Assembly: GCA_004764695.1 (NCBI GenBank)
Contig: SMSO01000025.1
Location: forward strand, 1,922,001-1,986,000
DNA from: Schizochytrium sp. TIO01
Lineage: Eukaryota; Protista; Bigyra: Labyrinthulomycetes
Direction: 5' to 3'
DNA: 64,000 nucleotides
Position numbers and translations under genes: made by a program. The notes beneath the pieces were generated by a model. It saw only the letters and a list, made by a program, of their open reading frames with translations. It was not told where the DNA came from and searched no databases. Numbering within the stretch: the stretch's first letter is position 1; each line of letters begins with the position of its first letter. Of this stretch, positions 25,121-45,082 are shown piece by piece.

Positions 25121-26560
25121 TTAGGTCTCGTAATCTTGTACGAGCTGTTGAACACGAATAAGAGATTCTTGGAACTGGTCACGCTCAAAACCTGCCTGTT
25201 CATATTCGTGCATATATGCATTGACAGCAAACATTCGATTAGCTTTCACTAAAGCAGTGCGAATTGGGTTAGCAATACTTTGTGTGTTGCTAAGGCAGCC
25301 AATTGTCTTGTCCAGATTTTGTAAAGTTGAGTTGCACTCCTCATAGCGAACAGAAGCATACAACCCAGGGAAGTTTGCTTCAGCGTCGAGTGCAGCTACT
25401 CTTGAACCCTTGCCACGAAATGTATACAAGGTGGCGAATGGGGGCTGCCGAAACTTCTTGTCCATATAAGTTCTTGTCTCCTTACTCAAAGCAGCCCAAG
25501 AAGAGGAGGTAAACGAAACAACATCTTCTCCAAGTTGTGGCACACTTGTTACACGAAGACAGTTTAGACTTGGACGTATACAAATTTCTCGAACTGTATA
25601 GTCAAGAATATCATGGTCTCGCCACTGCTGTGATGAATCCAAACCTTGTGAGGGTATTAAGGTACTTGCACATACATTTCTTGCAAGCACCTGATTCAGA
25701 TGCTCTAATTCTGGCCGCTCTACTCGTAGCGCTCGTTGGCACACAGTTCTAGCCTCATCATTAAACAAATTGATAATACCATGTGAGGTCTGCTGTATCT
25801 CTGCAAGGGTTAGGGCAACATTATAGTTCTGCACAACAACTTCTCCCAGCTTGTGTGGCCAAACTACCACGTTGGCGACTGTGGCGCCAGGGAACTCATC
25901 ACGAACCACCTCCGTCATACGAGACCCAACACCAGATCCAGTGCCACCTGCTACACTTTGTAAGAGCAAAAACCCGCTCAAACTGTCACAGGCCTCCGCT
26001 TCTCGGCGTAGCATTTCTGTTGCCCGGGCTGCCACAAGCGGCCCGTGTCTTACAAAACCCTGCGCCCAGTTGTTGCCCGAGCCACCTTCAAAAGTCAAGC
26101 GCCGATGAGCATCATAGCGCCATAACCCACGGCGCGAGAGACAGGTATCTACAACACGAGGCTCCATGTCTACAAGAAGGGCCCGTGCAACCCTTCGATC
26201 AGGCAGACGTGTCCGTTTCATGTTTGGTCCGTTTTGGTCATTCCGAGTGGTCATGCTTTCTTGCCTTCTGAGCTCTTCAAGTACAATTTCTTCCTCCGCA
26301 TCAAGACTAGGGTTTGCATAGAAGAATGTCTCTCGGCGATTCTTTGCCGCCACAAAGCTCTCAATCTGCCTTTCCGAGCGAGTTTGGAGTGCGTCCAAGG
26401 CACCTGGTCGTGGTGGTGCTGGGCCTCTTAAAGGCAAATTAGGCAATGGCGTTGTATCTTGAATATTCCCTTTGACACAAGTTGAGTGCAGTGCATCAAA
26501 AATAGCCTCTCCAAGCTGATTACCACATTGCCCGAGCTGGACAGCAACCACAGAAGACAT
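25121..26560 (-). CDS. TUBD1: Delta-tubulin
   Basis: Motifs MSSVVAVQLGQCGNQLG, ARALLVDMEPRVV, GGSGNNWAQG, LLQSVAGGTGSGVGS, VWPHKLGEVVVQNYN and MFAVNAYMHEYEQAG. The WP..GEV.VQNYN and GSGNNWA.G motifs are the delta-type forms. No acidic tail. Confidence 0.9.
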   Translation of the reverse strand: MSSVVAVQLGQCGNQLGEAIFDALHSTCVKGNIQDTTPLPNLPLRGPAPPRPGALDALQTRSERQIESFVAAKNRRETFFYANPSLDAEEEIVLEELRRQESMTTRNDQNGPNMKRTRLPDRRVARALLVDMEPRVVDTCLSRRGLWRYDAHRRLTFEGGSGNNWAQGFVRHGPLVAARATEMLRREAEACDSLSGFLLLQSVAGGTGSGVGSRMTEVVRDEFPGATVANVVVWPHKLGEVVVQNYNVALTLAEIQQTSHGIINLFNDEARTVCQRALRVERPELEHLNQVLARNVCASTLIPSQGLDSSQQWRDHDILDYTVREICIRPSLNCLRVTSVPQLGEDVVSFTSSSWAALSKETRTYMDKKFRQPPFATLYTFRGKGSRVAALDAEANFPGLYASVRYEECNSTLQNLDKTIGCLSNTQSIANPIRTALVKANRMFAVNAYMHEYEQAGFERDQFQESLIRVQQLVQDYET

Positions 26561-27477
26561 GGTCACGCCAACGTAGCAAGCTAGCTTCTACTGAATGAAA
26601 GCTTTCAGACTGTGCAAGACAGACTAAAGCGCTGAGTCTGAGCGCCAATCTAAAGATGTTAGTTTTAAAAAATAGAAGAAGCTTTGGCACCAAGGTACCG
26701 GGTGTTCGTAAGAGAACGTTCGGGGTATCCTTCTTGCTGGCTATTCAGTTGGACTCAATCTCGATCGGCATCCGTGCAGCACGCTGACACGATCTGGTTG
26801 GGCCTAACTTATGGAAAGAATGCCTTTAATGACCTTCAACATTAAAGCGAGTTCAATCCCCGCGCTGCGACAAGTTTTGTTAAGCTCGAGTGCGGCGTGG
26901 AGAAGGAAACCTCTGCCTCTATCCTCAACACGAGGGGTTTGCTGTTTTTTCGTCTTCGAAAATGGTGAGATACGCTCCAGGTCTTGTAATTAGCATAATG
27001 TATACCCATCCTTCTTGGTTTTAAAAATAACCTATAGTGGGATATATAACAGACCAGGAGTAATACGTGTAGTGTGTTGTCCGTCTTCCTCGAGTAGATA
27101 TTAATCTTTGGTTATCAAGCTAAAGAGTGCTGGACTTGTCTTGGAAAATTGCACGGATCTCTATTAATTTGGAGGCGATGTGATCATAAGTTTTTTAGGT
27201 TTTTGTTTTTTTAATATGGCCAAAAGAAAGATGCTTGAGTTAAGTGGTTCTCAGCAAGATGAGATGCAACAACAACGTGACACAATTGCAGAAAAGATTG
27301 CAATGTGCACTTTTTAATTCAAGAAAAGATTGTCATTATCGATAGATAAAGTTGCATATTATTCATGGTGTAGTATCGGAACTATGGTCTCTGAATAGGA
27401 TAGAAATCTCGATATTGAGAGCAGAATGATTTCGTCGTGAGGGAAGCCAAATTTGAGCGTCTCAGCTTTATAATATT

Positions 27478-30261
27478 CTACCTTTTAAAAGGTTCCTCAG
27501 GCGTAGGTGCATTCGAAGACAAGCTGGTTGAAATTGACCCCGCAGACCTCTGTGAGAGGCGTTTGTATATTTCCTGAACACCTGAAGATCCGGGCAGAGA
27601 AGATGCGACCGAGGACGCGAGAGACCGGCGTTCTGATTTTCGTCGTCCTAATGATGCTCGCTTCGGAGTTTCTGAAAGATCAGGAGCTACATCAAGAAGA
27701 CGTCTCGTATTGCTCAGAAAATCTTCTTGAGTTAATGGTTCATTAGCGAAACCAAGACCAGATGATACCCAACGCTCGCAGAGGTCATTGTATGACCATA
27801 CATCCGTATGGTTGGGCAGCAAAAATACGGGGTCTCGGATTGGCTCACCCTGAAGATCAACAAGATCGTCAGAATCAACACTCATGTCTTGCAAAAGCTC
27901 AGGATTAAGACGCAAGCTCATATATGGTACGATGGCATCCATTCGATTCTGTCTCTGCCATTCTGGCCAGGTAGACAACCACTCCTCGAATTGTTCCTCC
28001 GTTACAGCTAAAGCTTCTTCCCTTGCAGCATTGATTTTTTCCTTGCTAATAGAAACTGAATGAGGGAAAATCATCGCTTTTGATGATACAGGCAGGTCTA
28101 AAACGTCACGCAGTTCTATCTCAAAGCGGAGGTATGATGACACATCATCGACACCCCGATCCATTGAGTTGATATAGGCTTCAACATGTTTGTGGACAAT
28201 GTTCAAGCGCATGATACGTCGGCCAAGAGTACGCAATTTCTCGCGGTTTCCACGAGCGTGTGCAATGGCAACAACAACCTGCATTTGCCCCAATGCCCAA
28301 ATAGGTTTGTCTGCGCATGCATCAACAGCATCAAGCATGCGAATGATAATTTCCTCCCGCGAGACAGGATCATTAATAATGATGTCAAGAACCTCTTTCA
28401 CGCGCTCTCTAAGAGCCGGGCGGTACTCTTCAGTAACATATTCTTTCGATTGTAAAAGCATGCTAAGGAACTGCAAGACCCCCCACACGTAAGCTTTATC
28501 AATATGGGCACGCAATTCTTCGGCATTTACGCCAAATTCACGTGCGACGTCTTCAAGCGAGGAAAGTTCAAGGCGGTTAAAGAGAACTAGGACACCCTTG
28601 ATACTGCGCAATTGTTGAATGAGATCATCCGGAAGGTTTGTATCTGCAATATTTACAGCTAGTGGACGCTTGGGAGACCTCGCAATCGATTCAATGGGCA
28701 CACTTTCTAATGATGTACACCCAGCAAGGTTGATTTCTCGTGTGCGGATTAACTGAATCGAAGGTGGAATGTATGTCAGTGATGAACACCCTTCAGCGTT
28801 CAAAGTATCTCCAACAGTGAGGTTCTCTGGCAGTGCCTCAAGTGCAGTGCAGTTAATCAAAATAAGATTGTCACGAATTGTAAGTCCGGCAGGAAGTTCC
28901 TTTAGATTGGTACACCCTGCTAAAACAAGGCTGCCATTGATTTTTTTCAAATTTGGTGGAAGGTACTCAATCTGGGTGCATGCTACTAAGTATATACTGC
29001 CAATAGTCTCTATATTTGCGGGGAGACCCACCAAACTATCATTGATGATACAGTTCAGTTGGCCTTTAACTTGCATGTCAGCTGGTAAAGTAAACGGCGT
29101 TGGGTTATCTAGTCGTAAGATAAGATCTCCATCAAACTTCATTCGTTCGCCAAAGGTTCGAATAGTAACCTTGGATATTACAGCATTGCCCTTTACATGA
29201 AGATCATCGGGCAAATCAATTGTAAAACGAGCATTGTCTTCGGAGACTCTTCCTGATTTAACTCCCATACTGTTACGGCTTGTAGTGTCGGCTGCGTCCT
29301 CTGATTGATGGTCAATTTCCTCTTCACCTCCTTCGCTTTCGTCATCAGGGAGATTGGAGATGTACTCTCGAACGATTGCAAGGTCACGAAGCGCACAAAA
29401 CCCTGGGGCTATTTGACCTGGGTATTTAGGCACCTCAATAATTGTGTCTGTTTGCACTGTAAACTTCGGAAAGTCTTCTCCGAGGTGCAGACGTAAAAAC
29501 TTTTTGGGGGCATTGATGACCCTAAGGGAGTTAGATTCTGGATCCCATCCAATAATCGCCGAAGAAAGCTTGTCCTTGAGAGCAGAGTTCTCACCCAGCA
29601 TATCAAGGGTTGATTGAATTTGCGTGGCGTGCATGGAGTGTTGGGTTCTGGCTTTGAGTTTTGTAGCAGCCCATTCGACTTCGTGTTCTACACAGCGGCC
29701 CGCATTGATAACGCCCAGGCCTAGGGGAGTTAAACATGCTATGGAGAGCGAGCCACATACAGCTGGACAGCAAACACAAACAAGAACACCACTAATGACC
29801 TGTGTAAAGCAATTGCAGCAGCGATTGTTTTCTGAGCAACGCTGTATCCGAGCAACACACGGCAGCCCTAATTCTCCTGGGAGAAAAATTGTGATTGGTA
29901 TCAAGACTGGTACAAGGACTCCAAACAAGACTATGTACATGATACCCTCAATAAATCGTACCCATATGGTCTCAGGTCTGCACCAGTGGTCAATTTGCCA
30001 TGGTCTATAGCACCAAATGGGCGTACAGAGGAGACTCTTGGGTGCTATACCTTCAAGAAAATATGGTTTCCAGTCCTCAGCGTCATATCTCATGCCACAA
30101 CATTTCCCTAAATACACACTCGCAGGCACCGTATGCCTCGAGGCTAGCCGCCTTGCCTCTTTCACAAAGGCGGGATGTTCACCATCCTGACGAAGCCAAG
30201 AGTTGAGCCATTCCTCGTGTGCATGGTGATCGAGGATTTCTTCAAAAGAAGGGTGAGACAT
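27478..30261 (-). CDS. LRR-NEL (IpaH/SspH-type novel E3 ligase)-U-box-like protein, paralogue A, with Cys-rich membrane N-terminus
   Basis: 927-aa intronless ORF. LRRs such as LPENLTVGDTLNAEGCSSL. NEL core MLDAVDACADKPIWALGQM...LGRRIMRL...DDVSSYLRFEIELRDVLDLPV...AMIF...FEEWLSTWPEWQ, with the Cys codon at 28315-28317. Then GEPIRDPVFLLP...CERWV. Confidence 0.85.
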   Translation of the reverse strand: MSHPSFEEILDHHAHEEWLNSWLRQDGEHPAFVKEARRLASRHTVPASVYLGKCCGMRYDAEDWKPYFLEGIAPKSLLCTPIWCYRPWQIDHWCRPETIWVRFIEGIMYIVLFGVLVPVLIPITIFLPGELGLPCVARIQRCSENNRCCNCFTQVISGVLVCVCCPAVCGSLSIACLTPLGLGVINAGRCVEHEVEWAATKLKARTQHSMHATQIQSTLDMLGENSALKDKLSSAIIGWDPESNSLRVINAPKKFLRLHLGEDFPKFTVQTDTIIEVPKYPGQIAPGFCALRDLAIVREYISNLPDDESEGGEEEIDHQSEDAADTTSRNSMGVKSGRVSEDNARFTIDLPDDLHVKGNAVISKVTIRTFGERMKFDGDLILRLDNPTPFTLPADMQVKGQLNCIINDSLVGLPANIETIGSIYLVACTQIEYLPPNLKKINGSLVLAGCTNLKELPAGLTIRDNLILINCTALEALPENLTVGDTLNAEGCSSLTYIPPSIQLIRTREINLAGCTSLESVPIESIARSPKRPLAVNIADTNLPDDLIQQLRSIKGVLVLFNRLELSSLEDVAREFGVNAEELRAHIDKAYVWGVLQFLSMLLQSKEYVTEEYRPALRERVKEVLDIIINDPVSREEIIIRMLDAVDACADKPIWALGQMQVVVAIAHARGNREKLRTLGRRIMRLNIVHKHVEAYINSMDRGVDDVSSYLRFEIELRDVLDLPVSSKAMIFPHSVSISKEKINAAREEALAVTEEQFEEWLSTWPEWQRQNRMDAIVPYMSLRLNPELLQDMSVDSDDLVDLQGEPIRDPVFLLPNHTDVWSYNDLCERWVSSGLGFANEPLTQEDFLSNTRRLLDVAPDLSETPKRASLGRRKSERRSLASSVASSLPGSSGVQEIYKRLSQRSAGSISTSLSSNAPTPEEPFKR

Positions 30262-32458
30262 AGTTTTGAAAAAATCTTTCTTCTGTCCGGCACAGCAGCG
30301 ACTTCACCGAGGCTGCCAGCCAAGGCAAGACTCTTTCAAAGACGGGGTTTGGCGTTGCCACCCAGCCTGAAGAGCTGTCAAGCTTCAATGGAATTTATTT
30401 TGGCTGTTTGCAAGGTCCCTCGCTCGCCCCCTTTTCATTCTTTCCATTACTTCAGGTAGTCAAATTTTTTATTTTTTTTTTAAAATAAAATTGAGGATTG
30501 GCATAAGGTTAAATAATTCCATTGTAGCGTTTCAATTATTCATAATGATTTCTTTTCTTTTAAATTTGTTTTCGTCATTCGTTTATCGATGACTCATTGG
30601 TATACTAAGGTTAATGACGGAGCCAGTCTTTTCCTGGGCTCCTCGCGTATTCAGCTGTGAAGAAAACTGGAATGAGACTGCGTCGAACTCACAAACACCG
30701 GTAAGTTCTTGCAATTGGCCGTGCGGAGAACGATGTTCCTACGTAGACATGTGCAGGAGGACACCGAAATCGCGGGGAGGGAGGAACTATGAAAGCTGTA
30801 TTGGCCAAAATTAAAAATTGTCAGCAGCTGTGCTGGAAAACGATTCTCGGCACGTGCAACAGGGGTATCCAGCACAAGCCTATATCATCAGAGGCTAATT
30901 ACAATATTCGCCTCCTTTGCAGAGATAACTCGGAGGTATGAATGTATAACTGCTTGACGGAATACGAGAGAGATCTTGCAGTTGAATCAGTTGAATAGAT
31001 GCTAATAGATAATTTTAGCGCTCACTAAAGAGAGAAGTTCTCCCGACTTTCGTGCCTTATATGCAAAAGTGCTTTACTTCAAAAGAGAGCACGCAAAATC
31101 GAGAAGCGCTGCCAACGATGACCAATCGCGGGCTTTTCTTCATGCATATCTAAGTTGGTAACCTGTCGATTTTCGTTGGCGCACTTGTTGTGTACCTTCT
31201 GCCTATTTTGTACACGAGTTACGGCGGTGTGGCGTGGCTTCAACGTTGCCGGTTTCAACATAGGAGTCTATGAGCGATTGATTAGGTTTCTCCGATAAAT
31301 CGAGACGCAACTCGAAGTAGAGAAAATGGACTGGAGCTTTGCATCATGTTTTGTTTTGACCTGTGGGTTCGCATCAAGGAACGAGGTCGCAGCGCTAGTA
31401 GCGAAAGGGTCTGCAAAGACGATGTACACACCCAAGTTTCGGTAATGGCTCGGAGACTCGGGCTCAAAGTCACACTACTACAGTGCTGAGTTTTCATTAA
31501 AGTGCGAACTGCATGCAAGTAATGATGAAAGTAATGAATATACGAAGGCAAGACCTGCAACATCTGAAAGGCTCACATTTTCCTGAGTGTGGTGGCAATG
31601 TATTGCAAGGAGAGACGTATTTACCAATGTAAGCTTCTTGGCGGTCCAACAGTATTATTAAATACTTGGCTTGGAAGCTTTAGAGTTTATTGAAGGGAGA
31701 ATGCTTAATGCTATGAATAGTACCACCTAGCTAGAATTAAGTCAAGAATAGGAGATGCATGAAGTCCAGATTAGTGCTCAAGCACTCTCCATGGGCTCCC
31801 CAGTGCTGCTGTGAACAAGCATGATTCGGCAAAGGGTTCATGCCGAATGAAAGTTTTGGCTAGTAGGGGTAATGTGCCAATGGAGATTGAATCATGGAAT
31901 ACATAGGGTGAAAATGTACACATGGGTGAAAGTGAGTGGTGGTGCAAACATCTTATGCCAACATCTTATTATATTATGTAAGGTCACTGGCTTGGAGCAA
32001 TGTTCGAGTATCTCATGCGACAACGCAATATAAAAAGTACGCAGGGTTCACCACTCCCTGTGTAGACACTTTCCATGTTCATCTGCGGAAATGAACTCAA
32101 TTTCCTGACCAAAGTACAAACAATCTTGTCATCTCTGATCTTCGCCCCTGAGGATACTGATAATTACATTCATCATAGTAGTCGATATTGAGGTTTGTAG
32201 TAGCCCAATACCTTCCAGCTTCTAAGACTAATCTAGCTCTGTCCCTGCTTTCAATGGTTGTTTCGAATCTTCTCTCCTGCAAATGCGCCACCACCATGCA
32301 ATGAATGATTCTAGGCCTAACACCTGAGCTATATAGTACTAGTCGCTTTACTTCTACTACTCTGTATCTAGAATAGCTTTTGCTGCTTGCTGGACGATAG
32401 CTTTAGCCCTGTAGTCCTGCAAGCCCGGCGGCGCTGGGCACTCTTCAGCCTGCTAGGA

Positions 32459-33052: not shown

Positions 33053-36000
33053 TCATCGCTCGAAATCATTTTCAGGAATGGGCGCAGTGTTGGTGCTGGC
33101 AGAAAACCTAATAGGATATCGACCAGAGGATACCCGTGGATGTTGCTGGGATACACGACGAGAACCTTCGGGTCTTCTTTCTACTGATCCCCGAGTCATA
33201 AATTGTGGTGTTGAAGAGGAAATTCTCTTCATATATACATCGTGACTTGGCGAAACCATATTGTTGGTTTTAAATGTCCGGGAGCTGCTATGGCGAGAGC
33301 TACTCTGCCTGGAGTTGTTATTCTGTTCAAAAGTCCTTGCAGCCTCAATTGAGTCTTCTTGAGCAGCAACTTCAAGGTCAAGGTCAGCTTCGTTGTTGTG
33401 CAGTATGTCTTCTTTAAAATGAGGCTGCATTCGAGATTCTTGACGCTTACGACTACGGCGCAAACGCTGAATAAAGCTTCCCTCACGAACACCAACACCA
33501 CTTGTAGCTTCTTCTTCGTCGTCAGAATCCTCCTCGATCTCTTCCGGGATCACAGCTACTTTAGATTGTGCAAGTGATGTCGACACTCTTCGTTGGCGAC
33601 GAAGAGATTCGCGGCGGCCTAGTGAAGCGCGCTGCGGCGTTTCCAAGGTGGTTGGTTTTGTGTCAAGAAGGCGGTGAAGATGGCTGAAAAAGTCTTCCTT
33701 TGAGACAGCCATGTTGTTAAAATCAAGCCCAGTGGAGACCCATCGCTCACAAAGATCATTGTAGGACCATACATTACTATGGTCGGGTAAGAGGAAGACT
33801 GGATCAGTCATCGGCTCGCCCTTCAGATCTGTAAGGTCTGTTGGATCGACATTTGGGAGCTCAAAGAGCAAGGTTTCATGGCGTTGCAAGTCCAGATAGG
33901 GAACAACGGCCTCCATGCGTTCCTGTCGCTGCCACTCAGGCCAGGTAGCAAGCCACGCTTCAAACCGCTTCTCTCCGATGGCAAGTGCATCACGTTTAGC
34001 AGCCAAAATAACAGGAGCTGGGATTGGGACATGACGTGCATAGATCATAGCTTTAGACGACACAGGTAGGTCTAGCGCATCGCGCAGTTCAATCTCAAAC
34101 CGCAGATACACACAGACATCGTCTACATCGCGCTCCTGTTCATTGATGAAGCGGTTAACATGCTCGTGGACGACACTGAGGCGCATAATCCCACGACCAA
34201 GCTTGCGAAGCTTAGCGCGATCCCCTCGCGCGTGTGCGACTGCTGCGACTACTTGCATCTGCCCTAGTGCCCAAATAGGTTTGTCAGCACACGCATCAAC
34301 GGCGTCAAGCATTCGCAAAACGAGTTCCTGTCTAGCTACAGGGTCAGTCATGATAAGTTGCAAGACCTCGTGCACCCTATTTTTCAGGTCTGGTCGTATT
34401 TTCTCGTCTTTGTACTCTTGTGAAGACAGGAGCATAGACAAGAACTGCAAAACTCCGCGTAAATAAGCAGGGTCGATGTAAGGCTCTAGGTCTGACGCCT
34501 GGATATTGAACTCTCGGGCGACGTCGAAGAGGGAGCTCAGCTTAACTTCTCCATCACTCTCATTGTTTGCACCTAACTGGCGCAAAAGCTCGCTTTCATT
34601 GCCTAGAAAGATTGTCACATTTGCGGCTGCGCCTATGGAACGGAGTGCATCAAGCTGGCTTCCAACGAGACTAGTGTTTTGAAGATTGATCAGTAGCCTC
34701 TCAGATCGTGGAGCCTCGAGGGGCGTAATAGGAAGCGAAAAAAGGTTCACACAGTTGCTAAAATCTAAGAGGTTACCACGCAGCACCAAGCTATCGGATA
34801 TATACCTGAGCTCTGTACAATCGGTAGCAATAAGGTCTCCGTTCACAGTAAGGTTTCGCGGCAGGCACTGCAGAGAAACACATCCGCGAAGAAAAAGGCT
34901 TCCATCGACAGTTAGATTATCCGGGAGAGACACCAAACTTGAGCAACCATCTAATATTAGATCGCCCTGAATTAGAGAAAGTGTTTCTGGCAACGATGCA
35001 AGGGATATGCAGGTATGAAGGTTCAAAGATCCAGTGCTTGTCCAGTCAGGCAAGCTTCTTAGCTGAGTGCACTCCTGCAAGAAAACTTGTCCATCAACGA
35101 TGAGGTCATTAGGTAGATTCTCAATCAAGCCGTCCGTATCTATAACGCAAAGGCTTCCTAATTTCATCTTCGATCCCCATCGAAGAACCTGGACATTGTA
35201 CAGAAACAAACAACCTCTAATTTTCAAGTCATCTGGCATGATCAAAAGAGAGGAAAGCCCTTCTTTGTTATTATCCATCTCACCTGCATCCAATGCTGGA
35301 ACTGAGGCAAATGCCATGTCACCCTCAACTTGAATACCAGACGGGAGCTGCTCAGGCAGCTTGAGGTCCTCTGTACTAAGTCTAACTTGCTCAACAAGAA
35401 TTAGTAAATCGCTACTGACTACACGTAGCTTCGGAATTTTCGAGCCAAGTCGCAATTGCAACGGGGTGTTTGGGGTCATGCGAATGCTCAATGTAGAGCT
35501 TTCTTCCTGCCATTTTAGCCATTCTACTGGAGAACGTCTCAATGAGTCCCTGACATCTTCACTCTTAATCTCACCAATTGCTTTGGAGTATTCATGGCTG
35601 TGAAGACAACGAATGCACTGTGTCCGACACGGAATATTATTTATACATGTGCGTGAGGTGTGGGAACACGCAGCAGCAATGCTACTAGGGCTACACGCGC
35701 TAAAAGTTGCTGCAATCTTGTTCCCAAGACCTTGACCGCAGGTCACTGTGCACTCATGGCAAGAAGCTGCGCATAATGTACAAGAGCGACGTTTGCACGA
35801 CTCTACCAGAACGTCACGAGTAGCAACACAGCCACGCTGTATATCAGTACTGTGTGACTGCACTGGTTTAGCTGCTACAACGAGCAGCGGTCCAATAAGA
35901 GCCAAAGGTACCAGGGTCATACCCACAAACCCATACATACCATAGGTAAGAGCAACCGTCCAAGAGCCCCCAAACTCACATTCGTGTTCGTCCTCCTCAC

Positions 36001-36418
36001 TGCAGGGCCGACTGCATGTGAACGAATCATAGCTATCATAAGTGGGCTCTAAACTGGTACAATAGGCACAAACCGCGCAAGGCATGCACTCGAGGAAGGC
36101 TTGCGCGTACATGAGTCCAGAGAGTCCTCCTAAACAGCAGTATTGTACACCACGCTCTTCATCAAATGCCTTCAGGTCCACAAGTCCTTGGCAAACCAGA
36201 AGCCCTGCAATGATGGAGCCGCTATCCACCTCGTCAGAGAGGACCAGAGGCACCATATTGTTGCAGCACCTGCCAACGCAGCTTTGGCGAGCCTCCAAAG
36301 TGGTTTCCCGTGACACAGCCTCATAGAGTGACCTGCTCACAAGCTCAGCTGCCTGCGAACACGCGTGAGGGCTGGCCCGCGACGCCTCAACTCGCGTGGG
36401 AGCCGCTGAGGCAGCCAT
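33053..36418 (-). CDS. LRR-NEL-U-box-like protein, paralogue B, with very Cys-rich membrane N-terminus
   Basis: ATG at 36418 (MAASAAP) gives 1121 aa. LRRs such as LPDNLTVDGSLFLRGCVSL. NEL MLDAVDACADKPIWALGQM (Cys codon 34289-34291)...DDVCVYLRFEIELRDALDLPV...FEAWLATWPEWQ. Then GEPMTDPVFLLP. Confidence 0.85.
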   Translation of the reverse strand: MAASAAPTRVEASRASPHACSQAAELVSRSLYEAVSRETTLEARQSCVGRCCNNMVPLVLSDEVDSGSIIAGLLVCQGLVDLKAFDEERGVQYCCLGGLSGLMYAQAFLECMPCAVCAYCTSLEPTYDSYDSFTCSRPCSEEDEHECEFGGSWTVALTYGMYGFVGMTLVPLALIGPLLVVAAKPVQSHSTDIQRGCVATRDVLVESCKRRSCTLCAASCHECTVTCGQGLGNKIAATFSACSPSSIAAACSHTSRTCINNIPCRTQCIRCLHSHEYSKAIGEIKSEDVRDSLRRSPVEWLKWQEESSTLSIRMTPNTPLQLRLGSKIPKLRVVSSDLLILVEQVRLSTEDLKLPEQLPSGIQVEGDMAFASVPALDAGEMDNNKEGLSSLLIMPDDLKIRGCLFLYNVQVLRWGSKMKLGSLCVIDTDGLIENLPNDLIVDGQVFLQECTQLRSLPDWTSTGSLNLHTCISLASLPETLSLIQGDLILDGCSSLVSLPDNLTVDGSLFLRGCVSLQCLPRNLTVNGDLIATDCTELRYISDSLVLRGNLLDFSNCVNLFSLPITPLEAPRSERLLINLQNTSLVGSQLDALRSIGAAANVTIFLGNESELLRQLGANNESDGEVKLSSLFDVAREFNIQASDLEPYIDPAYLRGVLQFLSMLLSSQEYKDEKIRPDLKNRVHEVLQLIMTDPVARQELVLRMLDAVDACADKPIWALGQMQVVAAVAHARGDRAKLRKLGRGIMRLSVVHEHVNRFINEQERDVDDVCVYLRFEIELRDALDLPVSSKAMIYARHVPIPAPVILAAKRDALAIGEKRFEAWLATWPEWQRQERMEAVVPYLDLQRHETLLFELPNVDPTDLTDLKGEPMTDPVFLLPDHSNVWSYNDLCERWVSTGLDFNNMAVSKEDFFSHLHRLLDTKPTTLETPQRASLGRRESLRRQRRVSTSLAQSKVAVIPEEIEEDSDDEEEATSGVGVREGSFIQRLRRSRKRQESRMQPHFKEDILHNNEADLDLEVAAQEDSIEAARTFEQNNNSRQSSSRHSSSRTFKTNNMVSPSHDVYMKRISSSTPQFMTRGSVERRPEGSRRVSQQHPRVSSGRYPIRFSASTNTAPIPENDFER

Positions 36419-38412
36419 TTTTCTAGGTATGTGGTGTGATCTTGGTGATCTCACGTATACATCTATCTAATCTATGAATGGGAGGTTGTATGAGGAATAT
36501 GTGAAAGAAACCAGACGTGGCGGCGAAGGAGCGGCACGTGCAAACTTCGAAGAGCAAAAGTAGAGCTCCTTGAGGATTTACGAAAGACGACCAGCTTCTG
36601 CTTAGCCAGCTCGCTACCTGGTTGACTGACTGCGTGCCTAGCTGACCTGCTGGATGTGAAAGGGTGATCCCAGACAAAGCGCGCCAGCTTAGTCGAGAAG
36701 GAGGAATGAAGGAGGGGATTGATTGATTGATCAATATGTATAATAAGGCTCTCTATCTGCTAATTTTCACTTTATTCCTACTTTTTCCCCTATTTTATTC
36801 AGTATAAGGGCACTTTTTTAATTTCGCTGAATAGCAATCATGACTAGGAAGTGTTAGTATCAGTAGAAATAATTAGGTATCTCCCAAAGTTTGGTGGTGG
36901 AAATGATCATGCGAAAGACTTTCTATTCAGCTGTTCACGAGTTGCAAGAGGGCCCTGATCGTAATCACGATCGACACACAGCAGGTACTGGTCGTGAACC
37001 TTTCCTCGGCATGTCTCGATATGATTTCTGCGTTGGATAAATGTGTGCAACATATTGCTTCTGCAAATTGTGTTCTTCTTCAAGGTCATCAACTCTTTCA
37101 GTACAACGATCCATGAATGATGAATTTGCACAAGCTATCAAGCACTGCCATTAAGATGTAGTTAGTTACTTTTATAGGTATTCAAGCATTCACAAGACGA
37201 AGATGTAGTACAGAAGAAACCCATCTGTGCATCGAAAGTTGCAACCTTTAAGACTGGGCTTTGCCCTACATGGAGGCAAAACTCTGCACTGGCACGAGGT
37301 GGTAACTCCCGCGCCCACATCATAAGAGGCCACAGATACTACGTAAGCCCACTCTGGGAGTCCGCTCAATCTTCACGCCCCCCTCCTCCGCGAGTTCGGA
37401 GCTCTCGATTGATGACACGGACCTCCAAATCGCATAGCATCAAAGGCTCTGGTTCCCATAGCTTTTACCTTCCAATAGGCAGGTAGATACTACTAAGCAT
37501 TTAGTAAAAGTTATAAATCAGAAATAACAAAATCAGTAAATAACAATTAAAAAAAGCAGCCACTGAGAGTTATTCATCTGTCAATCAGGTCTTGACAAGT
37601 ATCATTTCATCGTTGAGATCTTCAGGTGAGCCTTCAGTTTATACTTCGTAAAGCGGGCTAAATGAGGGATGGCGTGTGGCACCATTCAGGATCATGGTCG
37701 TCAGCACCCCCGAAGAATTCTAGTTTTAATTAAAAAAACTGGAAAAAATCTGATTAGTAAATACTACGATAGGAAGTACCGAAATAAGCTAGGAATTACC
37801 TATACCAGCATAGGATATCCGCACGTGCACGATAGTATTGAGCACTGCTAAGCTAGTCCTAGTGCTCAGACATGATAGTGCACGTAGAAAGGTAATAAAC
37901 TGCAATCTACTGCTACTACTACTTGCCAGCGAGCCTGCAGTCATGCATTGAGCTATGGCTAGAGGGGCCTGCGAATCTCCCAAACTTGAACTTAGTCGTC
38001 AGGTTTTCTCTTTTCGAAGAGCAACATATTTTGCTGTGCTAATTTGTTAATGTATTGTCAAACACGCACCCTGACTGAACCGCTATGGTGCGCACGTGAA
38101 TTTATCACACGAGCAAAAAACTGCATTATCAGGGCAGCAAGAGCTTGAATACGGCCAAACAATGTCGTTATAACCCAATGGAGAAGCCGAGGCTCCTTTA
38201 AACCTCAACGCACTTAATTAATATGAATACAATGCCTCAAACTATATCCCGGATTTCCGTTTTTAAAAAAAGTTTGTATGTGCACGTTAGAAATTAGTTA
38301 ACCTTTGAGAACCCCTTTTAGCCAAAACTTTGGGCAGAACAGGATTAGATTTCGCAGGTCGAATATCAAATCAAACACTAGAGTCAGAACTCCACCACTG
38401 AGATCTGAGAGA

Positions 38413-42113: not shown

Positions 42114-42517
42114 TTCCCTATCGTTAGCTCTGCCTAGAGTCGAATACCTGACTATACTAGCTAATGCCGCATTCAGGAAGTACGAGCTCCGTACGGAAGA
42201 AGAGTGAAAGAAGCGATTGGGACATTCTTCAATCGCGCACTTGCACTTGCACTTGCAGCACTTGCAGCACTTGCAGCAAAGGAGTGGAATAAGTACTAGG
42301 GGGCTCCTACCTAGGTAGGGAGCCTCAAGCATTCGGCTGCGTAGGGAGTCCGTCGCTCGCTCACTCATTTGATCACATAGTTCGTCAGCGCGATCAGACC
42401 ACCGCTACTGACTGCGAGGGTCGTCGAACTTGCCGCACACGCTGGTTGCGGTCGGGCAGGTGGCAATCATATCGTAATCGACACACCAATTGATCGATCG
42501 TCTCCTGATTGATTAGG

Positions 42518-45082
42518 ATGAGCCGCGCAAGGTCTGCCGTGGCGGCAGCCACGGATGCCTCGTGGGTAAGTCGCGACTCACGTATGGAACTTGCGTTTGC
42601 CAAAACGCTTGCGCACACTCGACTTGCAGCTCAGAAACGGGAGCTGCGAGGGGCTTCGAGTGAATCAAGACACAGGTTAAGCACGTTGGCTGAAGAAAGT
42701 GGCACAGACGTCGAAAGTCACTCCTCGAAAACATCCTCGGGCAGAAATATTGCACAAAGTCTTGCTCGAAATGCTGGAGGGCTTGATGAAGAGGACAGTG
42801 AATTGTTGGAGGATTTTGAAAACTTTGAAGCAAGTCCTACGAAAAGTGGAGATGAAAGCGCGGAGAATGGCACACATATGAGACGAGGTCAAGAAATCGT
42901 TGAGACGCGAAGTGCCAAATCGAATGTGCTTAGAACGATGACATGTTTTCTTAAACAGCCTCGTATGAAAAATGCTGGTCATCGCGGAACAATTGGAGGC
43001 ACAGTGCCATGGCACAAGGACTCACGAGCCCTGCGTGAGCTGAGAAAACTTGATCCTGATTCTCTATTTGTAAAAAGCCTCATGGCAGACCATGTACGTC
43101 TACAGTGGGATTCAGATAGTAGAATCATCCGCGTGACAAACCTTCCGTCTGAAGTCTTGGTACTTGACCTCATTGACCAATTTCTACCAATGCAGATTAT
43201 GGGCAATGTAATGATCGTTGCCAGTATGAAGAAGCACAGCAAACATGCTCTTCCGTCTGGTCTCCATATTCGCGGTAATCTATTACTTATGACTGAATTT
43301 GATGAAGAAGGAGATTTCACAAACCCAGCACAGATCAGTCTCCCAAATAGCCTATACGTTGGAGGCAACCTCATGCTACTCAATATCGAAGTCCTACGCT
43401 GGGGGTCGCCCATATGGATTGGCGGCGATTTTGCTGTACGTGAGGCAATGCCATGGTTAGTTGAACTCCCAGCATTTGCAGAGCTAGGAGGTACCTTGGA
43501 CTGCCGCGGGTGCACGATGCTTAGGGAACTTCCTAAACTTGTCGAACACTTTAATACGATTCTTTTGGATGGCTGCACCTCTCTAGAAACCTTGCCAGTT
43601 GCTCTCGCAAGTGTTCAAGGTGATTTGAGCCTTGTTGGATGTAAAGCTCTCAAGAGCTTACCTGACTATCTCATCGTTGAAGGGGGTCTGTACTTGCAGA
43701 ATTGCACCAGTCTTACGGCTCTCCCAAGCCTACTCACAGTCATTGGAGACGTAAACTTACAAGGTGCAATTCGCCTCAACAGAGTTCCTGTAAACATCAA
43801 TCTCTGTGGTGGTAAGCTCGACCTTCGAGACTGCATCTCGTTGCGTCGTCTCCCTCTTGCGCCATTTGAACGCAAGCGTTCCCGAAGGCTTATTGTTGAT
43901 GCTCGAGGGACTTCAATTGACCCTGTGACATGTAAAGTTCTGCGCTCCATTGAAACTGACACTGTTAAATTTCAACTAGACCCTAGTGCTTTCATGTCCA
44001 GCACTCTGCCGTCCCAAGATAGCCAGTCGGGCGATGTGACAGACCAACTAGGCAATGATCATACAACTGACCCCAGCTCTGAAACGACTAATCCTAGGAG
44101 AAGAAAAACGCAAGTGCTTCTTGAAATGCAAAACATTGAGTCTGTATGCTCTGTTACAGATGCCTTGGAGCTCTTTGGTATGCAAGATATTGCATTAGAA
44201 AGACATATTGATTATGCATACCATCGGGATGTTATTGAATTTCTCAAGCTACTGGCATCAAGTCTCGAAAACCGTGTTCCCGAGTTGCGCAAACTTCTCA
44301 AGCGCCGTCTTAGAGACGTTCTTGAGATTGCTGCCAATGACGATGTGGCGAGAGAAGAGATCCTCTTTCGTATTGTCGACTCTGTGGACACGTGTGTTGA
44401 CAAACCGATTTGGGCGCTTGGCCAAATGGAGCTGGTTGCTGCCTTGGCTCACGCTCGTGGAAATCGAACGCAGCTTCGTGTGCTTGGCCGTGGTGTTATG
44501 CGTCTTGGTATTGTACATAAGCATGCGGCGATTGTGCTTAATGCTAGCGACCTCGACGTTGACGATGTGTGTGTCTACTTAAAGTTTGAGTTGGCATTAA
44601 GAGATGCTTTGCAGCTGCCTGTTTCCCCACATGCTATGGAATGGGATCAATATGTCAATATTGACCCTCATGAGATTGCTGCTGCCAGAGCAGAAGCAAT
44701 CGGCATTACAGATGAAGCATTTGAGAACTGGCTAGAGGAATGGCCTCCCTGGCAAACTCAATTGCGCTCAGAAGCAATTGTCCCCTACGAGTCATTGAAG
44801 TCTCCAGAATTATCTATGGACATTAACCTTGCTGATGCCACAGATCTCTATGGAGAGCCAATACTTGACCCGGTGCTCGTTCTTCCAGACATTGCCAATC
44901 CTTGGTCTTACAAGGAGCTTTGTACTCACTGGGTAAGGACGGGTATGGATTTTTCGAACAACGTAATATCCCCTTCCCAATTTCTGCCACGTGTTCAAAA
45001 GTTGCGTCAACGCGATCTATCAAAGCAATCAAGCTTTAAGCGACGCCTATCCAAACGAATGTCACAGTTTGGAACGGCCTGA
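42518..45082 (+). CDS. LRR-NEL-U-box-like protein, paralogue C, with soluble disordered N-terminus
   Basis: First ATG 42518 (start uncertain). LRRs such as LPDYLIVEGGLYLQNCTSL. NEL IVDSVDTCVDKPIWALGQM (Cys codon 44393-44395)...LGRGVMRL...DDVCVYLKFELALRDALQLPV...FENWLEEWPPWQ. Then GEPILDPVLVLP. Confidence 0.85.
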   Translation: MSRARSAVAAATDASWVSRDSRMELAFAKTLAHTRLAAQKRELRGASSESRHRLSTLAEESGTDVESHSSKTSSGRNIAQSLARNAGGLDEEDSELLEDFENFEASPTKSGDESAENGTHMRRGQEIVETRSAKSNVLRTMTCFLKQPRMKNAGHRGTIGGTVPWHKDSRALRELRKLDPDSLFVKSLMADHVRLQWDSDSRIIRVTNLPSEVLVLDLIDQFLPMQIMGNVMIVASMKKHSKHALPSGLHIRGNLLLMTEFDEEGDFTNPAQISLPNSLYVGGNLMLLNIEVLRWGSPIWIGGDFAVREAMPWLVELPAFAELGGTLDCRGCTMLRELPKLVEHFNTILLDGCTSLETLPVALASVQGDLSLVGCKALKSLPDYLIVEGGLYLQNCTSLTALPSLLTVIGDVNLQGAIRLNRVPVNINLCGGKLDLRDCISLRRLPLAPFERKRSRRLIVDARGTSIDPVTCKVLRSIETDTVKFQLDPSAFMSSTLPSQDSQSGDVTDQLGNDHTTDPSSETTNPRRRKTQVLLEMQNIESVCSVTDALELFGMQDIALERHIDYAYHRDVIEFLKLLASSLENRVPELRKLLKRRLRDVLEIAANDDVAREEILFRIVDSVDTCVDKPIWALGQMELVAALAHARGNRTQLRVLGRGVMRLGIVHKHAAIVLNASDLDVDDVCVYLKFELALRDALQLPVSPHAMEWDQYVNIDPHEIAAARAEAIGITDEAFENWLEEWPPWQTQLRSEAIVPYESLKSPELSMDINLADATDLYGEPILDPVLVLPDIANPWSYKELCTHWVRTGMDFSNNVISPSQFLPRVQKLRQRDLSKQSSFKRRLSKRMSQFGTA

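Follow-up and report, generated by a model that had tools for sequence, protein, structure and literature searches.

Ubiquitin ligases of the NEL family (PF14496), among them IpaH, SspH1, SspH2 and SlrP, are presented in reviews as bacterial effector enzymes that are structurally unlike the E3 ligases of eukaryotes (e.g. PMC9320238). In SspH1, residues 405–622 form the catalytic subdomain and residues 623–697 an E2-Ub binding domain, the ‘thumb’, which consists of two long antiparallel helices and one short helix (PMC12506513). Here we analyse a 64,000-nucleotide stretch of the genome of the protist Schizochytrium sp. TIO01 (contig SMSO01000025.1, positions 1,922,001–1,986,000; hereafter the window), in which three open reading frames (ORFs), the paralogues A, B and C, each encode a NEL domain. 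An original prediction, made from the letters of this DNA, had proposed that a U-box-like segment follows the NEL domain in all three and replaces the thumb. We found the predicted peptides at the positions quoted for them, and PF14496 in each ORF; the positions hold for A, B and C, with the strand to be read as minus for A and B (the plus strand at 27718–27870 is full of stops). As described below, a module with a predicted U-box-like fold stands behind every NEL domain of this genome.

The host genome (64 Mb, 37 contigs) is that of a eukaryote, and the proteins closest to the ORFs of the window come from the thraustochytrid Hondaea fermentalgiana, the dinoflagellate Durusdinium trenchii, MMETSP transcriptomes, and metagenome and Logan assemblies. 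The three NEL genes thus reside in the genome of a marine protist and do not encode bacterial effectors. They share with the bacterial NELs a homologous catalytic subdomain with its CxD Cys (Z scores of 13–22 to SspH1 and SspH2), and a repeat-type substrate-binding domain upstream of it. Unlike the bacterial enzymes, they are encoded by a eukaryote, are not secreted effectors and do not classify as type III effectors; they lack the thumb and have a U-box-like domain instead; and their N-terminal domains vary, with many paralogues in one genome (18 here). A pattern scan with one protein, which detects close relatives only and so leaves room for distant bacterial NEL-U-box proteins, found no NEL-plus-module relative in a collection of bacterial and archaeal genomes. 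Full-text literature searches covering hybrids of NEL and U-box, NELs in eukaryotes, and IpaH together with Symbiodinium returned no description of such proteins, in keeping with the original prediction, which knew of no described hybrid, and the public records of the relatives carry automatic names only, such as ‘SspH1’ and ‘ipaH4.5’, or unrelated labels.

NEL catalytic subdomains in A, B and C

Sequence, motif and predicted fold all place the three ORFs in the NEL family. PF14496 is the sole Pfam domain in each, with bit scores of 91.4, 89.6 and 77.3 for A, B and C (cut-off 24), and the CxD motif takes the form D[AT]C[AV]DKP in the three proteins, its Cys and Asp being invariant in an alignment of 56 sequences. 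Two AlphaFold2 (AF2) models were made for A: one of the module alone (model 1; amino acids (aa) 785–872, 30 aligned sequences) and one of the NEL domain and module together (model 2; aa 578–872, 56 sequences, alignment A4). Residues 1–199 of model 2 superimpose on SspH2 499–711 with a Z score of 21.6 and a root-mean-square deviation (rmsd) of 2.2 Å over 195 aa, and on SspH1 422–623 with a Z score of 13.2. The fold predicted for this part of A is that of the all-helical catalytic subdomain, with predicted local distance difference test (pLDDT) values above 90.

A module behind every NEL domain of the genome

In A, B and C, a conserved segment of about 60 aa begins about 25 aa after the Pfam NEL match, which ends at aa 770, 843 and 755, respectively. 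The A segment alone recovered 11 copies in the 64 Mb genome, and a profile built from the alignment of these 11 modules (A1) found 18 sites in a genome search at E ≤ 1, with no other matches. The likeness between the segments is far greater than chance would give. The Pfam NEL model returned 18 NEL loci from the same genome, one of them split by a stop. A module match lies downstream of each of these NEL loci, at most a few tens of bases away, which gives 18/18. The module had been predicted for the three paralogues of the window; it is not confined to them and accompanies every NEL of the lineage.

Two of the 18 loci appear damaged. At G000:C31:2872556-2873351, a TAA separates the two parts of the NEL and the open frame over the module is just 143 aa long, and at G000:C31:3265416-3265604 a TGA falls within the module match.

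Searching 1.84 billion cluster representatives with the module profile gave 93 proteins at E ≤ 0.001. In about 80 of these, the module follows some 20 aa behind a NEL domain, as located with a hidden Markov model built from this genome’s NEL domains; what remains consists of short fragments and of proteins with low-complexity repeats. The module and this NEL clade strictly co-occur. P0095, an MMETSP transcript of 276 aa, is the only convincing module match without a NEL; its module (residues 98–149) lies between stretches resembling leucine-rich repeats (LRRs), and either the arrangement is truly free-standing or the transcript is chimeric or incomplete.

The taxonomy of the relatives is known in part, which leaves some room for bacterial carriers, although none was found. 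Four relatives from Hondaea and assemblies (P0016, P0017, P0069 and P0089) bear the NEL-module cassette on very different N-termini, with lengths of up to 3458 aa. The automatic source names of the relatives include importin alpha, nephrocystin-3 and ryanodine receptor, and from these names only, ARM-, TPR- and SPRY-like N-termini are possible. This resembles a design in which the catalytic end stays constant and the sensor domain is exchanged.

Relationship of the module to U-boxes

Model 1, the module alone, has a mean pLDDT of 72.9 (core 81–88) and the topology beta-hairpin, helix, loop, short helix. The best Foldseek matches of this model in the PDB are U-boxes (Prp19, LubX, Ufd2/E4A/E4B and CHIP), with RINGs ranked lower; the top rows have probabilities of 0.97–0.99 and template modelling scores of 0.62–0.66 normalised to the Prp19 U-box, with E values of only ≥0.012. 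VIA-align places model 1 on the Prp19 U-box with a Z score of 5.2 and an rmsd of 2.2 Å over 55 residues, and in a VIA search of 48,161 representative chains, which does not rely on Foldseek, the top 50 were all U-box, RING or SP-RING (Z 5.1–3.3). Model 2 reached a mean pLDDT of 92.8 and a predicted template modelling score (pTM) of 0.89, with the module at 90–95; its residues 219–287 match Prp19 (Z 5.0, rmsd 2.0–2.2 Å over 55 aa) and also Ufd2 881–949. The pTM suggests that the U-box-like fold is rigidly associated with the NEL core in the prediction. No set of Cys/His ligands is conserved across 87 aligned modules, and the predicted structures show a RING-like cross-brace fold without zinc ligands. 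Judging by the two models, the module very likely has a U-box/RING-like fold.

Profile comparisons point in the same direction. We aligned six genuine U-boxes from this genome (A2) and compared them with the modules by hhalign. The 11 modules of A1 matched A2 with a probability of 48% and P = 1.8e-4, in a register that places DPV on DPV, W on W and PL on PL, and the 87 modules matched it with a probability of 55%, P = 1.2e-4 and a score of 25.3. As a control, 200 column-shuffled versions of A2 gave a maximum score of 16.2 and a median of 8.8, and the reversed alignment gave 8.7. Remote homology in the U-box register is thus found at the profile-profile level. When the A1 profile was run against 177,635 PDB sequences, two Prp19 U-boxes (1N87 and 2BAY) came out on top at E = 0.8, which makes them a pointer only, with the register W/Y-V..TG.D..N.PLSxEE. 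One segment run by itself against the PDB with phmmer gave chance matches only (a kinase, a viral protein). In a language-model search with A aa 792–862, the nearest named neighbours were NleG, U-box and Baculo_RING clusters, at scores of 0.79–0.84, which lie under the level at which they would be more than leads.

Across the 87 module sequences the best-kept positions are G (84/87), D-P-V (65, 79 and 70), W-S (60 and 66), H-W-V (63, 80 and 59), T-G-x-D (71, 85 and 83 for the three named residues) and N (77), along with D/E-L and a final L-x-R, shortly after which many of the proteins end. The closest described counterpart is the minimal U-box (PF04564) of Prp19 (1N87, 2BAY), which the module resembles in predicted fold (rmsd 2.0–2.6 Å over 52–55 aa), in having no zinc ligands, and in its register: a hydrophobic residue, G, xxDPV, the beta-hairpin, a helix ending W/Y-V, TGxD, N and PLSxEE. 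It differs from U-boxes in falling under the Pfam threshold, in lacking the long C-terminal helix that most of them have, and in occurring only behind NEL. The U-box-type effectors of bacteria (the AvrPtoB C-terminal domain, LubX and NleG) are likewise RING-like folds, divergent and without zinc, that standard sequence models miss, and all three are among the structural or language-model neighbours of the module; in contrast to the protist proteins, they are stand-alone bacterial RING-type E3s without a catalytic Cys domain.

Several results weigh against kinship with U-boxes or against a role in E2 binding. Pfam gave no match at E ≤ 10 for the isolated 78-aa segments of A, B and C, and a PF04564 scan of the genome at E ≤ 0.01 found 8 other U-box/RING loci and no NEL module; by the family model, the modules lie outside PF04564. 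Of the checks that the original prediction had proposed for the isolated segments, then, the fold search came back with U-boxes and the PF04564 profile with nothing. The Prp19 sequence match stands at E 0.8 only, and it is gone when the alignment is widened and takes in NEL flanks (A3), the PDB matches then being to NEL only. The Z score of about 5 is modest, a value to be expected of a module of only about 55 residues, and rests on predicted structures; the list of matches is homogeneous. No canonical U-box protein is among the 93 matches from the 1.84 billion representatives. Paralogue A has Gly837 (27751–27753, minus strand) where 83/87 modules, B and C included, have the Asp of TGxD, and to judge from sequence its module, among the three, may depart furthest from the canonical form. 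The loop-2 Pro, an E2 contact in canonical U-boxes, is kept in only 30/87 modules, and the most conserved module residues may be purely structural.

Taking both sides together, we consider that the module is quite probably a true homologue of U-boxes. Although it behaves as a minimal, Prp19-like U-box, it does not pass the Pfam membership test, and we therefore use the name ‘U-box-like’ and regard it as a divergent representative of the RING/U-box fold class.

Absence of the helical thumb

A phmmer search of the PDB with the NEL domain and module of A gave alignments to SlrP, IpaH and SspH1 that end at WxxW (A aa ~771) and leave about 80–90 C-terminal residues of the bacterial chains unmatched. 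Homology and superposition alike end at SspH1 623, and the thumb of two long antiparallel helices has no counterpart in the protist NELs. From the limits of the superposition and the domain borders of SspH1 (PMC12506513), it follows that the catalytic subdomain is kept and the thumb is gone. Where the thumb would start, a short linker leads into the U-box-like module in the protist proteins, and beyond the module their translations continue into low-complexity Ser/Arg-rich sequence only, with no helical thumb there. The first eight residues of the A tail were included in the models (aa 865–872); in model 2, pLDDT drops over them, the last two 10-residue blocks having means of 69 and 45 and the last five residues lying below 50.

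It is thus supported, by predicted structure, that the protist proteins keep the NEL catalytic subdomain and carry the U-box-like module in the thumb’s place. This bears out the substitution originally proposed, with an hhalign P of about 1e-4, AF2 fold matches, and a NEL part that matches SspH1 422–623 only. The segment could also have been the ordinary helical C-subdomain of NEL, the outcome by which the prediction was to fall. We ruled this out, since both AF2 models give a beta-hairpin and helix and the SspH1 match ends at 623.

A proposed relay and its alternatives

NELs are not known to have any E2~Ub dock other than the thumb, and because it is absent here, some replacement dock is needed. 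In the mechanism that we propose, the variable N-terminal part (LRR-like repeats in A, B and C) would hold the substrate, and the compact zinc-less U-box of about 60 aa in the thumb’s place would dock the charged E2~Ub. Ubiquitin would then pass by transthiolation from the E2 to the NEL Cys (Cys649 in A) and from there to the substrate held by the N-terminal repeats, with the U-box and the catalytic subdomain packed as one unit. The whole would be a RING-to-Cys relay analogous to those of RING-between-RING (RBR) and RING-Cys-relay (RCR) ligases, using a canonical eukaryotic E2 dock in lieu of the bacterial one. The likeness to RBR and RCR ligases (parkin, HOIP; MYCBP2) and to HECT ligases would lie in this logic of an E2 dock paired with a thioester-forming Cys. 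The difference is that the Cys domain here is the all-helical NEL, which is unrelated to RING2/Rcat, to TC and to the HECT C-lobe.

The loop-1 Ile/Leu contacts the E2 in canonical U-boxes, as does I235 of CHIP. In the hhalign register this position aligns with L803 of A, and it is L/F/V in 76/87 modules. We favour E2 docking by the module because its predicted fold is the canonical E2-binding fold, because the loop-1 hydrophobic residue is kept and because the thumb is gone. By analogy with the RBR and RCR ligases, a relay from the U-box dock through the NEL Cys to the substrate is the course towards which we lean.

The U-box fold may, on the other hand, no longer bind an E2 and may instead be a structural cap, a dimerisation element, or an autoinhibitory or other regulatory piece of the NEL, with E2~Ub recognised elsewhere on the catalytic subdomain. 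The pTM of 0.89, which suggests a module rigidly packed on the NEL and not a free domain, would agree with this, as would the weak conservation of the loop-2 Pro and the resemblance of the best-kept residues (G, DPV, W, TGxD, N) to core or hydrogen-bond-network positions. The U-boxes of Prp19 and CHIP dimerise, and Prp19 is the nearest structural match of the module. Such a cap would still leave the missing bacterial thumb without the other dock that its loss calls for, and it does not sit well with the conserved hydrophobic position of loop 1 or with a fold that is the canonical E2-binding one; for these reasons we consider it unlikely.

A true dual-mechanism E3 would differ from the relay in that the U-box would be an autonomous RING-type ligase or E4 that transfers ubiquitin directly from E2~Ub to lysines. 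It could act alongside the Cys-dependent NEL or after it, as when the NEL primes and the U-box extends the chain. RING and U-box ligases have a linchpin residue after a ‘DPxT’ motif, and the conserved Asn of the module (77/87) aligns at that position and with the Asn of Prp19, which, along with the U-box fold itself, would suit an E3 of this kind. The Asn is possibly just structural, however, and RING1 of the RBR ligases is likewise a mere dock. Moreover, the module is never a stand-alone E3, save in one doubtful transcript. Because it lies constantly about 20 aa from a NEL whose catalytic Cys is invariant, we favour one coupled catalytic unit, and a dual mechanism appears decidedly unlikely. 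That the segment is unrelated to U-boxes, a lineage-specific NEL extension whose motif and AlphaFold fold are convergent or artefactual, would account for the missing Pfam U-box match, the non-significant E values against PDB sequences and a Z score of only about 5 from a program possibly biased to known small folds, yet it is highly improbable given that hhalign with its shuffle control, the top PDB sequence matches, the fold searches with two AF2 models and the language-model neighbours all converge.

Features and transcription of the three genes

The coordinates of the three genes and their parts are collected in Table 1.

Table 1. Features of the NEL genes in the window (positions count from the first nucleotide of the window)
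Feature	Position	Strand	Residues	Basis and remarks
Paralogue A	27478..30261	−	927 aa	ORF; Pfam NEL aa 595–770, E 6.8e-26; layout: Cys-rich hydrophobic N-terminus, LRR-like repeats, NEL catalytic subdomain, U-box-like module, Ser/Arg-rich tail
A, NEL catalytic subdomain	27934..28530	−	aa 578–776	AF2 superposition on SspH2/SspH1
A, catalytic Cys	28315..28317	−	Cys649	CxD motif DACADKP; motif search
A, U-box-like module	27670..27876	−	aa 796–864	AF2, fold search, hhalign; quoted peptide within 27670–27873 (aa 797–864)
A, Ser/Arg-rich low-complexity tail	27481..27669	−	aa 865–927	Translation
Paralogue B	33053..36454	−	1133 aa	ORF; Pfam NEL aa 668–843, E 2.5e-25
B, catalytic Cys	34289..34291	−	Cys722	DACADKP; motif search
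B, U-box-like module	33641..33844	−	aa 871–938	E 6.3e-32 to module profile
Paralogue C	42509..45082	+	857 aa	ORF; Pfam NEL aa 574–755, E 1.4e-21
C, catalytic Cys	44393..44395	+	Cys629	DTCVDKP; motif search
C, U-box-like module	44828..45031	+	aa 774–841	E 1.0e-28 to module profile

Contigs from four public runs, each from a different study, span gene A in one piece (27263/27446 to 30351/30430), without joints, with gaps on either side and at a depth quite unlike that of the adjacent gene. This pattern suggests an unspliced transcript that runs over the whole ORF, including the module; we grade it as suggestive because the runs are only presumed to be RNA. In the same runs, a unit at 26000–27060, which overlaps an ORF at 25121–26566 (minus strand), is represented by separate contigs that are 3- to 18-fold deeper than those of gene A. 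On the other side, no contig of these runs covers 30430–31320. Strain differences in gene A are also present in public runs: 7 changes are synonymous and 7 are non-synonymous. The only one within the module, S850N, affects a variable position, and E788D lies just upstream, in the linker.

After the module, A and B have a common basic Ser-rich motif, RASLGRR[KE]S..RR, and C has KRRLSKRMS (27481–27669, minus strand; 33053–33640, minus strand; and 45032–45079, plus strand, respectively). Sites of this RRxS type could be kinase targets or signals for membrane or nuclear targeting. In B, about 190 aa of low-complexity sequence lie past the motif.

Implications

These genes give a eukaryote with a large resident NEL family, in which the subdomain that grasps E2~Ub in the bacterial enzymes appears to be swapped for a standard eukaryotic E2-binding fold. 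We put the chances at about even that they make up a so far undescribed class of eukaryotic Cys-relay ligases, in which a U-box hands ubiquitin to the NEL Cys, with up to 18 or more genes, swappable sensors and a distribution over thraustochytrids and dinoflagellates. If so, the design ‘RING-type dock plus catalytic Cys’ would have been reached independently once more, beside RBR and RCR, the NEL fold would not be exclusive to bacterial effectors, and the direction of NEL transfer between bacteria and eukaryotes would be reopened as a question.

Should the U-box indeed feed the NEL Cys, the family would amount to a natural experiment in which the NEL core is a portable module that couples to E2 docks of different kinds. 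The few Cys-relay E3s (HECT, RBR and RCR) would gain a new architecture, and NEL chemistry and E2 hand-over could be studied in a tractable system from protists that are not pathogens. The expansion of the family, with its varied sensor-like N-termini, hints at a possible part in immunity or surveillance in these protists. The main interest of the finding is that a catalytic domain regarded as ‘bacterial’ is present in eukaryotes, where it would work beside an E2 dock of eukaryotic style.

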